A DNA stretch of 64,000 bases from Guillardia theta CCMP2712 (Eukaryota > Protista > Cryptophyta). The position numbers and the translations under genes were made by a program. Location: positions 74,790-138,789 of the forward strand of contig NW_005434610.1 of assembly GCF_000315625.1 (NCBI RefSeq), written 5' to 3'. A model generated the notes under the pieces. The model was not told the DNA's origin and ran no database searches. It saw nothing but the letters and a program-made list of their open reading frames with translations. This document shows, in pieces, positions 24,605-33,181 of this stretch. Positions within the stretch are counted from its first letter, which is position 1; each line of letters starts with the position of its first letter.

Positions 24605-24800
24605 CTACTTTCACTACCCACCTTCATTTCTAAAACAACCATCGAACGAAAGTACCCCACTCGGATTCACTTAGGACTACCCCCTACCCTCGAAGATAGC
24701 TCTGAAGAGGCGGGGGCAAGCAGAACCCATGGGCAAACATTGGGCCGGGCCCTGCGTTTGGCCCACCCAAGTGATGGCTACCTGTCATACCCGGAGTTGC
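24605..24800 (+). repeat. Direct copy of 27275-27437 with a ~34-bp insertion
   Basis: ctactttcactacccaccttcatttctaaaacaacc...cccggagttgc occurs at both positions. Confidence 0.92.
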
Positions 24801-24801
24801 A

Positions 24802-25332
24802 TCAACCCTTCAGTCACGTTGTGCCTCAGCTTGAGTCAAGCTCGGAAGAGCAAGGCTCCTACGGTATCATTCGGCTGAGTGGCTGGCAGTGCCATCGGAA
24901 GTGAACTGAGAGGACTCAACAAATTGGCAGTGCTGTATAGAACAGTTGTGCTCTTTATATCCGGCTCAATGCCATGATGCGAGACGGTCTCCCTTGTCTC
25001 TTCGTTGTAAAGGTTCTCTTGATAGTTGTTCCGCTCTTTTGGGCCGTCACGGGGAGATGTTGATAGCCTTAGTTGTGGATGCCACATCATTCAAGCAAGC
25101 AACAGTACAGATTTGTTTGCGTCATTCGACGAATTCATGACTAAGACAAAAGGGTACAACACGACAACAGACTGGCAATGATCTAAGCTGCTATCTCGGC
25201 GTCGCACATCAGAAAGACTCTGCGGGCAACATCATCAGTAATCAGCAAGCATATATCGACTCGTACCTTGATCCTGTTCAAGTCATGGCTTTGGCTCGCT
25301 GTCGTCCTCAGATTTTCGCCTATGCTTTTCCA
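24802..25332 (+). repeat. Inverted, slightly diverged copy of 28642-29179
   Basis: tcaacccttcagtcacgttgtgcctc...cctatgcttttcca is the reverse complement of tggaaaagcataggcg...gactgaagggttga, with small indels. Confidence 0.92.
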
Positions 25333-25495
25333 ACTTTTTCAATCCTTTTTACAGGGGTGGGGTAGAAGAATTTGTTGGGAATCGCAATGGCGATCCCGCG
25401 ACAAACTGTTTCGAGGATGAATATCTCAAGAATGAAAATCTGTACAATGCAAAACAAACATTTTGTATTTAGAGATACATACAAATTGTCATTCT

Positions 25496-28699: not shown

Positions 28700-29180
28700 A
28701 CAGGATCAAGGTACGAGTCGATATATGCTTGCTGATTACTGATGATGTTGCCCGCAGAGTCTTTCTGATGTGCGACGCCGAGATAGCAGCTTAGATCATT
28801 GCCAGTCTGTTGTCGTGTTGTACCCTTTTGTCTTAGTCATGAATTCGTCGAATGACGCAAACAAATCTGTACTGTTGCTTGCTTGAATGATGTGGCATCC
28901 ACAACTAAGGCGATCAACATCTCCCCGTGACGGCCCAAAAGAGCGGAACAATATCAAGAGAACCTTTACAACGAAGAGACAAGGGAGACCGTCTCGCATC
29001 ATGGCATTGAACCGGATATAAAGAGCACAACTGTTGTATGATACAGCACTGCCAATTTGTCGAGTCCTCTGCCACGGAGTCCACTTCCGATGGCACTGCC
29101 ACTCAGCCGAATGATACCGTAGGAGCCTTGCTCTTCCGAGCTTGACTCAAGCTGAGGCACAACGTGACTGAAGGGTTGAC
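28700..29180 (-). mobile_element. Degenerate Ty1/copia reverse-transcriptase remnant (duplicated at 24802-25290)
   Basis: Frameshifted translation PCLFVVK..LIALVVD-IIQASNSTDLFASFDEF..DLSCYLGV..GNIISNQQAYIDSYLD follows the copia RT order DPCLF/YVDDI/DLG..FLG/LSQ..YI. Confidence 0.55.
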
Positions 29181-29266
29181 AGCCGAGCCAACCCCTGGTG
29201 TTGGGATTAAAACTGATACCAATATTTAGTTAAATACCCCCCCCTTCCTTTCCTCATCGCGCCTCC

Positions 29267-31214
29267 ATGCAGAGCGTTCGGGGCACTATGGCGGGGGATT
29301 TAGGGGGTGCTGCATGCCATGGCAGGGTGTCACGAGAAAATTCGAATCAAAGTTTTGGCGGGCAAAGCTATGTTGCCCCACACCATGGGCAGGCCGAGGC
29401 CTCCAGCGAGGCCTCCAGCGAAAATATGCTCATCATGCCACAGACGAAGACAGATGACCAGCATTCGAAAGTGGCATGGTGTGTCTATGTGCACAACTTG
29501 TGTTGCAAGGTTGAAAAAACACAATGATTGCAATGATCTTGAGCAGATCCTGCTCTCTCAATGGGATGGTGCCTTGGTTTTCAAGCTGTTGGATTTCATG
29601 CAATGTCATGGCCATGCAACTTTATCTGTGGAGTGTGAAGACGAGAATCTTTTAGCTTCAGCGACCCATTACCTCAAGCGGAGTCTTCATTCTGTATCCT
29701 TGTATGAAGTCCAGAACAAACTAAAGGTCCTCGGAGATGTCTAGGGGCCTACATCAGAAGGATTCTCGAGATGTTTTCTCCAGCACTACACACAGGTTTT
29801 CGAACAACAAGCATCTGGTAAATCACATGGAGGCACAAAGGCCATTTATGAGCACTTGAATCGACTTCATACACGTATTGGCAATATTCACAGGAAGCAT
29901 CGAAACCTTCTTTCTCGAATGGAAGAATGGTCTACTGCTCACTTCGAGAATTTGAATTCATTGCAAACTACTATACACGATTACTTTGTGAAGTAAGTCT
30001 GAGATGTTGTTTATTTCCATGCCAGTGACCTGATGATCATTGCACAGGTATGCAAGAATGTCGGATATGCATGTTGACACAAGTGACACAAGATTCGCTT
30101 TAGATTCGCTTTAGAGAAAGAGATGTTTTGCAGGCTTCAAATATTTTGCAGACGGAACGGATATGAAGAAGTTCTTTCATTGGCCAACCACAATGACGAG
30201 GAGGAGGAAACATTCACTCCTTGGGAGATGGAGCGAAGAATAGCTGATGGACTAAATGACTTTGATGAACACAAGATTCGCTTTAGATTCGGCGAATGGT
30301 TATCCAATCCCGTCCTCTCTCCAATTACGAACAAGTTGCTGTTTTTCTCACCGTGCATCAATCACTTGTTGAAGAATGTAAGGCATTCCATTGGATCAGG
30401 GAAGTCTCAATCGTCTTCTACGGAAGCCCAGATATGGCATAAAGCTTACAGTGATATCGCCAAGAAGAATCCTGCTTGGATGACTCAGATGGAAGTCGAC
30501 GGGACCGCCGATCCACAATCGGTGGATATCATGCTGAAGATGTTCAGTGACAAGGCCATCAGTCTACTAAAGGCAGAAGGGCATGAAGCGACAGCAAGAA
30601 TGGCAAAGGCTATGTCTGGCCTGCACAAAGCATTCGATGAAAGAGGGCTGAAAGTTTCAGAGAGGATACGTCTCGTTCAAGAGGGTCGAAGATGGCTATT
30701 GGAAGGCATCGACTGGACCAGTGTCAGCCAAAAACATGTCAAGGGACTATCATCTGTAACATTTGAAGGCTTCATAGTTGCAATTGATGCTCGTCTGCAA
30801 GTACAGCAGTATGTGAGGGATAAGAATCATGCGCTGGGTGATAGAGACCATGAATTCAATTCACGAACTCTCTGCACGGATAGTGTAGAGAATCTGTGGT
30901 CCTTGATCGGCCATCTAAACAAGAAAGATTTTCTGAGATAATTCAATCAGACATGCATAGAATTATCTAAAAAGGTGGATCCAAACCTGCCTTTTGTATA
31001 TGAGCATTCGAAGAAGCGAATTGTCCTGAGCAAACCGCACGACCGTGAAGCTTTCAATGCACGGGATGGATCTGATAATGATGTGGAGCCAGACAATAGT
31101 ACGGAGAAGAACAATCGAAAGCGAGTATATGCTAAATCAGGGCAATGGGATGAAGGATTAACAGGTAATATGCAACGGTCCCGGGGATTGCGTAGCATTG
31201 CTGGCTGCAAGTAG
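29267..31214 (+). pseudogene. P-element-like DDE transposase copy 2, with premature stops and an internal deletion
   Basis: N-terminal CxxC..CxxC; stop at 29742; intron ~29993-30047. C-terminal core has CINHLLKNVRHSI, DPQSV..MFS, AFDERGL and NSRTLCTDSVENLWSLI, resembling P-type DxxHxxKxxR and QDxxExxF motifs. Confidence 0.7.
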
Positions 31215-33181
31215 AAAAAAGAGAGTACGTATTGTAGAAAATATTAAACACTGCTACGATGACATTCAAATGAGTGATACCATGATATAGATTTTACAAT
31301 TTCCTGATAGGCTATGGTGGTTTCACGATTGTCATCATTGCACAGGCTGAGTTAATCATCCTTAAACCTGGTCGCCGCCTTGCTGCCATTGCGATTTCCT
31401 GCAAACTCACCCACCCCCTCCTGAAAAGGTACCCCCAAGATATCGTACAAATACACCGGTACTAGACCCTTTTATTGGGAGTTCCACCCCCGTGGGCCGG
31501 GGGCAAGGTCCGATCCGGGTGCTGTGTAGCTCTCAGTGACCGTACGGGCACTCCTATCCCAGTCCGCCGTTTCCTCGGAGGGCCGGGGCCCGGAGGATCC
31601 TCCGATCCGAACAGTGATTCGCCGGGGCCCGGCCCGGGCCCAGTCCGCCTGCTGCCGACCGTCCCACGCTTCAAGAGACGAGTCCGCCTCTGTGGTCTAT
31701 GATACTGCAGTTGTACCGGGGGAACGGTCCCGTATGAGCCTTTGCCGGTGCGCCTATGAAACAGGGTCATAGGGCTAGTACGGCAAAGTAGTACGACAGT
31801 ACGGCTCTGGTCACTGGGCTGGGCCGGGCTGGGCTACCGTACTACGGTAGCTACCGTGCTTTCGATAAGGAGGTAGGGGTCATGAAAGTCAGGGTGGGAC
31901 CCCTACATAGCCGGGCCTATCAGGGGCTACCGGTAGGTATATCGGTGGTTTCTGTGTTGAACTTGGTCAGGGGGTACTCAGGTGATAGTACGGTCGACCT
32001 TGACGCTAAAGAAGATTGCGCCAGGGGGGGGTGGCCACCACAGAGTCAGCACCACTACCCCCTTTTTCATATCTTACCACCCTCAGTTTCTGAGGCACTA
32101 CAGATACTTTTGTGGGGACCACCCACCCTGCAACGGGAATGCAACTAATAAGCCACCAGCACCCACCCATAAGATTTAACTTTTCCACCAACTTGGCCTG
32201 GTCGAATCACCCCTATTGTTAACCATGACTACCCCCACCTCTGACCTGCACCTTTACCCCCACCCTGATTTCTGAGCTGGCAATCTCTACGAGTGGTCCT
32301 TTTCCACTACTACTCTTGTCGTACCCCTACCCCCTGATTCCCTATTACCACCCCCCTCGTCCTGCAGACTGCCACAAAACAATCACCCCCCCCAACCTTG
32401 TGCTCCACTTGTATGGCCACCACTCACTTCAATTCCACCCCTTCCTTTCTCCCACCCTACCCCCCCATGTCCCTCAATTTTCGTATCTCTCATCCTCTTT
32501 TGTCACCCTCTTTTATGTACCCACCCTCCGTCCCCACCACCACCACCCCTCCATTTTGAGTTTATCCTACCCACCTGCCGCTACTTTCAAACCATGCATG
32601 AAAGTTACCGTGGCGGCCCGATGGTCGCACACATGGTAGCGAGGGCATGGATGCAAGCATTCCCCTCCTCTGAGAACGCTTTACTGAATGACTACACATA
32701 CCTTTGTGCTGATCTTATCTTCATACCTTAGAGTACCAGTGCCTGATAGACTTGTACGCCTTCGTTTTTCAAGAACTCAGCGTGATCATGTGAATTGACA
32801 GCAAGGACTTTGACATGCGGGACAATACCTCATGATTGATCTCTGTCTGCTCGAATTTTTTCTTGCATGGTTGAAGATTTCTCACACGTAGCTTGATGTT
32901 CTCACGTCTTGTTAGGGGTGGACGTGTTATGTCGTTTTTGGTGCATTTTTCCCGGCTTGTTTGTTGTTTCCAGGTGCATATTTTCCCAATTTCCCTCAGT
33001 TTCATTCGTATCACAATTTACTTCCTCACTTCATCCATCAATTTTACATGTTTTCGGCTAGAATCCTTTCGCCCATTGCGATTGTGACTGGCTCTTTTGT
33101 AGCTGCCTTTTGATCTGGCTTGACGAAGACGACATGCGTTGAGCAGTATTTGGCTGCCTCTGAGTCTTTCTTGGCAGGTCG

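Follow-up and report, generated by a model that had tools for sequence, protein, structure and literature searches.

We analysed a 64,000-nucleotide stretch of the genome of the cryptophyte Guillardia theta CCMP2712 (contig NW_005434610.1, positions 74,790 to 138,789 of the forward strand; hereafter the window, with positions counted from its first letter). In this window, an initial annotation had noticed two transposase-like genes that point away from each other, and the two are indeed homologous. In our reading, to which we give a probability of roughly 85%, they are two defective copies, from two subfamilies, of a P-like cut-and-paste transposon family, lying in a rearranged patch of DNA. 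The two dead copies stand tail-out around a member of a host gene family and a fragment of a copia element.

A multi-copy transposon family in the G. theta genome

The genome searched was the G. theta CCMP2712 assembly (87.1 Mb in 669 contigs). The transposase exons were searched, aligned and folded one by one, by reference. Genome-wide, the right transposase-like gene of the window has at least 56 DNA matches and the left gene at least 58, and a search at the protein level returned 57 matches to the transposase family. Among these, stop-free exon-2 frames of 961-972 amino acids with full-length coverage were found in C3, C86, C24, C36, C42 and C80. Comparison of the window with the longer loci by blastn revealed each of the two window genes to be an element of ~4 kb with internal parts deleted. 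Full-length elements are the following:

L043:1214-5185, full-length subfamily A copy, 3,972 bp
L041:1439-5474, full-length subfamily B copy, 4,036 bp

The elements have terminal inverted repeats (TIRs) of 15 bp, with a 5' end that reads CACGGGGGTGGAACT... and a 3' end that reads ...AGTTCC(A/T)CCCCCGTG. In an alignment of more than 15 copies the flanks diverge directly outside the termini, at the 3' end right past ...CCCCCGTG. All five complete copies (L043, L044, L041, L046 and the C7 copy) are flanked by a perfect 9-bp target-site duplication (TSD), the five direct repeats being GGTCTGCTG, CAGCACGAT, CCGACCCCC, GGCAGGCGG and CGAATCCAA; five perfect repeats of this length are beyond chance. 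The genome-wide copy search that the initial annotation had proposed thus yielded a multi-copy family with defined TIRs and TSDs.

Each full-length copy carries two long open reading frames (ORFs), of 226/237 and 959/942 amino acids, separated by a 55-bp GT..AG intron. Because of this arrangement, and because the probable start lies at MGRP.../MSKT..., where the subfamily proteins begin to align, the transposase would be ~1,150 amino acids long. Subfamilies A and B share ~70% identity in DNA and 53-54% in protein; between B and a third subfamily (C86/C172/C20) the identity is 81%. The subfamily A copies on C24, C36, C42 and C80 are 99-100% identical among themselves, and transcripts of the long ORF of a full-length copy exist in MMETSP, which together argue for recent activity. 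Taken with the TSDs, the sequences indicate a multi-copy, cut-and-paste and recently active family. Other genomic copies display differing internal deletions, as would be expected if gaps left by excision had been repaired abortively.

The long ORF of a full-length copy is 99% identical to GUITHDRAFT_113559, a hypothetical protein of G. theta CCMP2712. That the family was uncharacterised, as the initial annotation had supposed, agrees with the public protein sets, which label it solely 'hypothetical protein'; our literature search turned up no publication about DNA transposons of G. theta.

Two damaged copies in a rearranged patch

Alignment to the full-length copies defined two window copies and the sole family terminus within the whole block:

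25333..27277 (-), left copy, subfamily A, dead (blastn against L043:1214-5185)
29177..31494 (+), right copy, subfamily B, dead (blastn against L041:1439-5474)
31480..31494 (+), 3' TIR of the right copy, AGTTCCACCCCCGTG (alignment of the 3' ends of more than 15 copies)

The genes had initially been drawn at 25496-27569 (-) and 29267-31214 (+). Both are homologous transposase genes; their extents required correction, as the left copy's homology to the family is confined to 25333-27277, with 27278-27569 unrelated, and the right copy spans 29177-31494. The motifs quoted at the time (RYS..LPS.STL, HLLKNxR and TD/QDxxExx[FW]) are present in ORFs of the window.

The left copy is 98-99% identical to full-length subfamily A copies. 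Its first 470 bp are missing, so that 5' TIR, start codon and zinc finger are lost. At its other end the last 41 bp are missing, a stretch that in the full-length A copy includes the 3' TIR. Internally there is a 135-bp deletion at 26067 and a deletion of ~1.4 kb, with a short duplicated filler, at 25738/25752; the latter has removed the second catalytic Asp, the CxxH and the E motifs. The motif GMRYS...LPLPSTSTL is retained in ORF 25683-26804 (-).

The right copy is ~97% identical to full-length subfamily B in the blastn comparison. Its 3' end is intact, but 28 bp, the 5' TIR among them, are absent from its start. Its exon 1 encodes CxxC-x17-CxxC (ORF 29307-29744, +) and is frameshifted near 29740, just past ...VLGDV; the intron lies at 29993-30047. 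At 30086/30116, 1.73 kb of internal sequence has been deleted and ~29 bp of filler, in part a copy of 30269-30291, stands in its place, and a TAA nonsense codon stands at 30942, behind CINHLLKNVRH and CTDSVENLW in ORF 30123-30941 (+). Since at least one terminus is missing in each copy and neither encodes a functional enzyme, neither window copy is able to move.

A copy elsewhere in the genome bears on how the left copy arose. The C27 copy has the same 3' truncation point (within 2 bp) and the same 1.4-kb deletion, still possesses both the 135 bp and the 5' TIR, and adjoins a reversed passenger unit (the gene between the window copies, described below) across 527 bp of unique DNA. Because the same truncation and deletion occur there beside different DNA, the left copy appears to have come by segmental duplication, not by transposition.

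Two segments, at 25344-25440 and 31336-31429, had been read as inverted boundaries of the locus. They are alike and inverted, but are the conserved 3' subterminal regions of the two subfamilies rather than the termini of a unit; they share the block ATCATCCT..GCCATTGCGATT.CC..CAAA, and are inverted because two homologous elements lie tail-out.

Around the copies, the window contains one inverted and one direct duplication, which the initial annotation had overlooked:

24595..24800 (no strand), S1, direct duplicate of 27278-27437 (from 27265 in the repeat search), with a 34-bp indel
27278..27437 (no strand), S1', original of S1, with the cut-off 5' end of the left copy on one side and the passenger unit on the other
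24802..25332 (no strand), arm A, ~100% inverted copy of 28642-29179, including an inverted copia reverse transcriptase (RT) fragment
28642..29179 (no strand), arm B, template of arm A, holding the RVT_2 fragment (~28799-28900, minus strand)

In the local REARRANGEMENT, 24802-25332 is the reverse complement of 28642-29179, and 24595-24800 repeats 27278-27437 directly. A 2.48-kb block, made up of the reversed arm and the left copy, lies between the two S1 copies. Every duplication junction coincides with a truncated element end, and in the search of the genome against itself S1 was confined to this locus besides short fragments elsewhere.

Could these duplications have been produced by the draft assembly of 669 contigs, so that the true locus is simpler? 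The arms are ~100% identical, compared with at most 97% for other copies of the family, and all of the sequences involved are repeats, both of which speak for such an artefact. However, the junctions are specific, show microhomology and fall at truncated element ends, and the arms differ by small indels (531 versus 538 bp; the direct duplicates measure ~170-206 bp). We regard an artefact as unlikely. In the reading of two dead copies in a rearranged patch, the inverted and direct duplications would have come from break repair at element ends, either by template switching or by aberrant transposition, events of a kind known from P and Ac/Ds elements.

The transposase is predicted to have a P-type fold

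A template-free AlphaFold model of the exon-2 protein had a mean pLDDT (predicted local distance difference test) of 79 and a pTM (predicted template modelling score) of 0.78. Foldseek placed the P-element transposase structures 6pe2/6p5a at the top (probability 1.0, TMt 0.65), with RAG1 next. VIA re-alignment to 6p5a gave Z 26.6 with a root-mean-square deviation of 3.4 Å over 393 of 442 residues (model residues 102-880, chain residues 128-566); the runners-up were Transib (Z 11.6), RAG1 (10.6) and Hermes (10.3). In a scan of 48,161 chains that was independent of Foldseek, 6p5a again reached Z 26.6 and the next score was 9.7, from generic helical bundles that cover model residues 258-403 alone. 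The superposition on 6p5a takes in the helix-turn-helix (HTH), the RNase H domain, the alpha-helical insertion domain and the C-terminal domain, which is the architecture described for P transposase (PMC7776569). The model thus displays a P-type fold, and supports assignment as P-like at the level of fold and mechanism.

E852 (in DSVENLW) is aligned with E531 (in DIVEHFF) of P transposase, and both D461 and E852 are invariant in the G. theta alignment, A1. D232 (in AMDKT/AIDKT), which falls in a strand that the model places at 226-234, is conserved in every copy spanning the site. We infer a catalytic triad of D232, D461 and E852 (numbering of the L041 exon-2 ORF). Between beta1 (226-234, with D232) and beta2 (405-413) of the RNase H domain the model has a helical bundle of ~145 residues (258-403) that P/THAP9 lacks, and the catalytic aspartates are accordingly 229 residues apart versus 73 in P.

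Three further sites set the family off from P and THAP9. The motif CINHLLKNVRH is invariant in all subfamilies, giving C(2)H with Cys for the Asp of D(2)H. Exon 1 has an invariant CxxC-x17-CxxC, a C4 finger instead of the C2CH THAP finger, and a Pfam scan of exon 1 found no THAP match (PF05485); both substitutions had been anticipated by the initial annotation. The exon-1 model is weak (pLDDT 58.6), with beta-hairpins predicted at the finger and long helices after it. Finally, the NKSD of P transposase (N376-D379) is aligned to N712-[PS]-[AS]-W715, in which the Trp is invariant in the G. theta family. D379 of P transposase reportedly sets its guanine specificity, as described by Mul and Rio in 1997. 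Because this Asp is replaced by an invariant Trp, GTP use by the G. theta transposase appears doubtful.

Relatives at the sequence level

An exhaustive HMMER search with the family profile returned 123 proteins at E ≤ 1e-3, in which the close named proteins are all from G. theta; a word-based protein search for the transposase likewise returned solely G. theta proteins. The remote relatives (E of 1e-28 and weaker, ~20% identity) have the motif DxxHxLTNxR in common. In a Pfam scan of 46 of them, 16 had YqaJ, 6 had a marginal PF21787 TNP-like_RNaseH_N match and 5 had HhH_3. Using hhalign, the G. theta alignment matched that of the remote clade (A4) with a probability of 100% and E 2e-42 over 465 columns, and paired WSFDGE (D461) with SFDGQ, which in P0014 falls within the PF21787 match.

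A mixed profile, A2, matched the P-element transposase 6p5a at E 1.3e-5. In this alignment [C/D]xxHLxKxxR corresponds to DTPHLIKLVRN, QSVxxAxxxFS to KQKVKLATQLFS, and the Glu motif to DIVEHFF, which holds E531. The remote clade alone misses 6p5a, so the sequence link is a modest one. A protein-language-model search pointed in the same direction: TNP-like/THAP9 clusters were nearest, the best match scoring 0.96 and sharing 209 of 256 features, and the 10 best atlas matches that carry a Pfam assignment all had the TNP-like family or clan in common. The initial suggestion of a divergent P-type family is therefore borne out by the fold match, unique to 6p5a among the chains scanned, by these TNP-like/THAP9 neighbours and by the mixed profile.

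Comparison with P, THAP9 and other superfamilies

As with Drosophila P and vertebrate THAP9 (6P5A, 6PE2), the predicted fold combines an HTH, a split RNase H domain with an insertion, and a C-terminal domain, and the modules follow the same order: zinc DNA-binding domain, coiled coil, HTH, and RNase H with its insertion (PMC7776569). The motifs [C/D]xxHLxKxxR, QxVxxxxxFS and DxxExx[FW] are also alike, as are short TIRs that start from CA, a single small intron, and the occurrence of non-autonomous copies in which internal deletions are patched by filler DNA. On the other hand, several defining P features are absent: the THAP domain, D(2)H, a 7-8-bp TSD (here 9 bp), a Pfam TNP-like or THAP match, and the NKXD Asp. 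The TIR is also shorter, at 15 bp versus 31 bp. Given a P-type fold without these features, we consider the family a divergent variant of the P kind. THAP has been reported as restricted to animals (PMC7776569), and 9-bp TSDs are made by a divergent P element of Drosophila buzzatii (PMC3698922). The latter, together with its miniature inverted-repeat transposable element BuT5, resembles the G. theta family in its 9-bp TSDs, its many deleted derivatives and the rearrangements at its insertion sites (PMC3698922); it is, however, an insect element with THAP and a recognisable P sequence, whereas the G. theta family has diverged much further and occurs outside animals.

We considered whether the family belongs instead to another C/DxxH superfamily, the likeliest being MuDR/MULE, so that the match to P would reflect the lack of solved MuDR structures. 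MuDR/MULE elements, with TSDs of 9-10 bp and a CxxH, agree with the G. theta family in both features, and no Pfam P model matches it. Nonetheless, there was no Pfam match to MULE (PF10551), SWIM, FAR1 or DBD_Tnp_Mut, the TIRs are short, and the motifs (HLLKNxR, RYS..LPS.STL, QxVxxxxxFS) are of P/THAP9 type. The unanimous TNP-like assignment of the atlas matches, the presence of PF21787 in the relatives and the superposition of 393 of 442 P transposase residues, insertion domain included, all point away from MuDR, and the D. buzzatii element shows that a 9-bp TSD also occurs with a bona fide P element (PMC3698922). We judge a MuDR/MULE origin very unlikely, the main reason for giving it any weight being that the searches brought up no solved MuDR structure to compare with.

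Two other assignments were tried and rejected. Kolobok elements have a TTAA-specific 4-bp TSD and 5'-RR..YY-3' termini (PMC9587614), whereas the TSDs here are 9 bp and of varied sequence and the termini are CA..TG. For hAT and Transib, the Z scores (10.3 for Hermes, 11.6 for Transib) fall well below the 26.6 of P, and the TSD is 9 bp, not 8 or 5.

A number of results weigh against a P-like assignment or against our reading of the locus. The initial annotation had looked to Pfam for a P-type match; when all ORFs of the two window copies and of the full-length copies were scanned with Pfam, nothing relevant came up, with no TNP-like match at E ≤ 1 and no ORF matched by PF21787, PF21788, PF21789 or PF12017 at that threshold. 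Profile searches of the whole genome with PF21787 and PF21789 at E ≤ 1 found nothing. PDB sequences were matched neither by the single protein (phmmer) nor by the profile built from G. theta proteins alone; that of the remote clade alone found no transposase in PDB and did not reach 6p5a. Because each of these two profiles misses 6p5a, the link to P derives mainly from the predicted structure and one mixed profile. The assignment of D232 is by topology alone. No MuDR or Kolobok transposase was among the matches, so that a comparable fold match to one of these is possible. The inverted duplication could be an assembly artefact. Lastly, we know of no observation of transposition by this family.

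With these points weighed, we still favour a P-like cut-and-paste family, for which we propose the following. The transposase would consist of an N-terminal C4 zinc finger, a coiled coil, an HTH (RYS..LPS.STL), an RNase H core that an alpha-helical insertion domain interrupts, and a C-terminal domain. It would recognise the 15-bp TIRs (CACGGGGGTGGAACT) and the conserved subterminal sequence, with the zinc finger and HTH presumably binding DNA; the element would be excised and then reinserted at a target cut with a 9-bp stagger. Abortive gap repair would account for the internal deletions with filler.

The DxxHxLTNxR clade, which includes the snail Batillaria attramentaria protein KAK7507914.1 and proteins from marine metagenomes, contains the nearest sequence relatives outside G. 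theta. The likeness extends from the second catalytic Asp through the C-terminal domain, over the 465 columns aligned by hhalign, with HMMER E values down to 1e-28. These relatives, known here from proteins alone, differ in their low identity (~20%), in having DxxH, and in their N-terminal modules. Tentatively, the G. theta family and the DxxHxLTNxR relatives (mollusc YqaJ fusions and metagenome HhH proteins) might form an unnamed lineage of superfamily rank beside canonical P, a proposal that we regard as possible but doubtful. If it is true, the lineage would be marked by DNA-binding modules of its own, a 9-bp stagger and an extra helical bundle in RNase H, and would possibly be GTP-independent; the cryptophyte elements, which are intact, 99-100% identical and transcribed, would then provide a tractable active representative. 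As a separate observation, the remote P-like clade (P0010-P0126) is large and has no Pfam family of its own. KAK7507914.1, at 1,583 amino acids, is an example of a relative fused to YqaJ. Our literature search found no paper that describes YqaJ together with a P-like or DxxHxLTNxR clade.

To our knowledge, a good understanding of P-type transposases is limited to those of flies and to vertebrate THAP9. A deeply divergent, apparently still active relative of P in a cryptophyte alga, missed entirely by standard domain models, would widen the known range of the P fold. Its natural variants (C for D, Trp for the guanine Asp, a non-THAP finger and a 9-bp stagger) could be used for probing the roles of GTP and THAP, and annotators of G. 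theta would gain an identity for a family of 'hypothetical proteins'. The window locus itself is of less importance, as a place where dead copies, filler deletions and local inverted duplications have accumulated around elements.

The gene and the copia fragment between the copies

The intact-looking spliced gene that had been noticed between the copies has two exons and a GT..AG intron, as had been described:

27438..29034 (+), 'passenger' unit, two-exon gene; exons ~27665-28152 and ~28208-28694, 55-bp GT..AG intron 28153-28207

Exon 1 contains five 39-bp tandem units (27728-27961), 88-100% identical, that encode a 13-amino-acid repeat. ORF scans found no Pfam domain in the gene, which is transcribed. 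Close copies occur on C92 (three in tandem, GUITHDRAFT_116146-116148), C85 (two in tandem), C617 and C27. The exon-2 domain is found at at least 40 G. theta loci, with 26-52% identity and mostly intact, which argues that the gene is a member of a host gene family and not cargo. Judged by its matches, this family appears to be specific to the G. theta lineage.

The initial annotation had also suggested that the two copies are the arms of one compound unit of ~6.1 kb that moves together with the passenger. This would fit the inverted orientation of the copies, with homologous 3' subterminal regions facing outward, and the true 3' TIR kept by the right copy, but it is highly improbable: the outward end of the left copy is cut short by 41 bp and has thereby lost its TIR, no 9-bp direct repeat is present at 25333/31494 (the outer 9 bp, tgcttttcc and GGCCGGGGG, are unrelated), the combination occurs at no other locus in the 87 Mb, the C27 evidence argues that the left copy arrived by segmental duplication, and the passenger is apparently a host-family gene.

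On C92, a diverged 3' end of the P-like family (...CCACCCCCGTG plus 16 bp) stands in front of every 2.6-kb passenger unit, which may thus at one time have been linked to a P-like element. A reading of the unit as a non-autonomous relative was considered as well; no 5' TIR was found at the tandem C92 units, and in C27 'CACGGGGG' is a match of only 8-10 nt, possibly due to chance.

The copia fragment noticed between the window copies, at ~28799-28900 (-), is short and shows homology to the C-terminal portion of the copia-type RT (RVT_2) domains that occur in long ORFs elsewhere in the genome. An inverted copy of it lies near 25080-25180. RVT_2 has at least 49 matches in the G. theta genome, many of which lie within long open frames, and the ORFs related to the fragment are 1,000-2,100 amino acids long.

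On its left, the rearranged block adjoins ORF 24039-24440 (-), which encodes a long Asp/Glu run, has a GAC/GAG repeat in a 12-bp register at 24301-24366, and is presumably a host gene.

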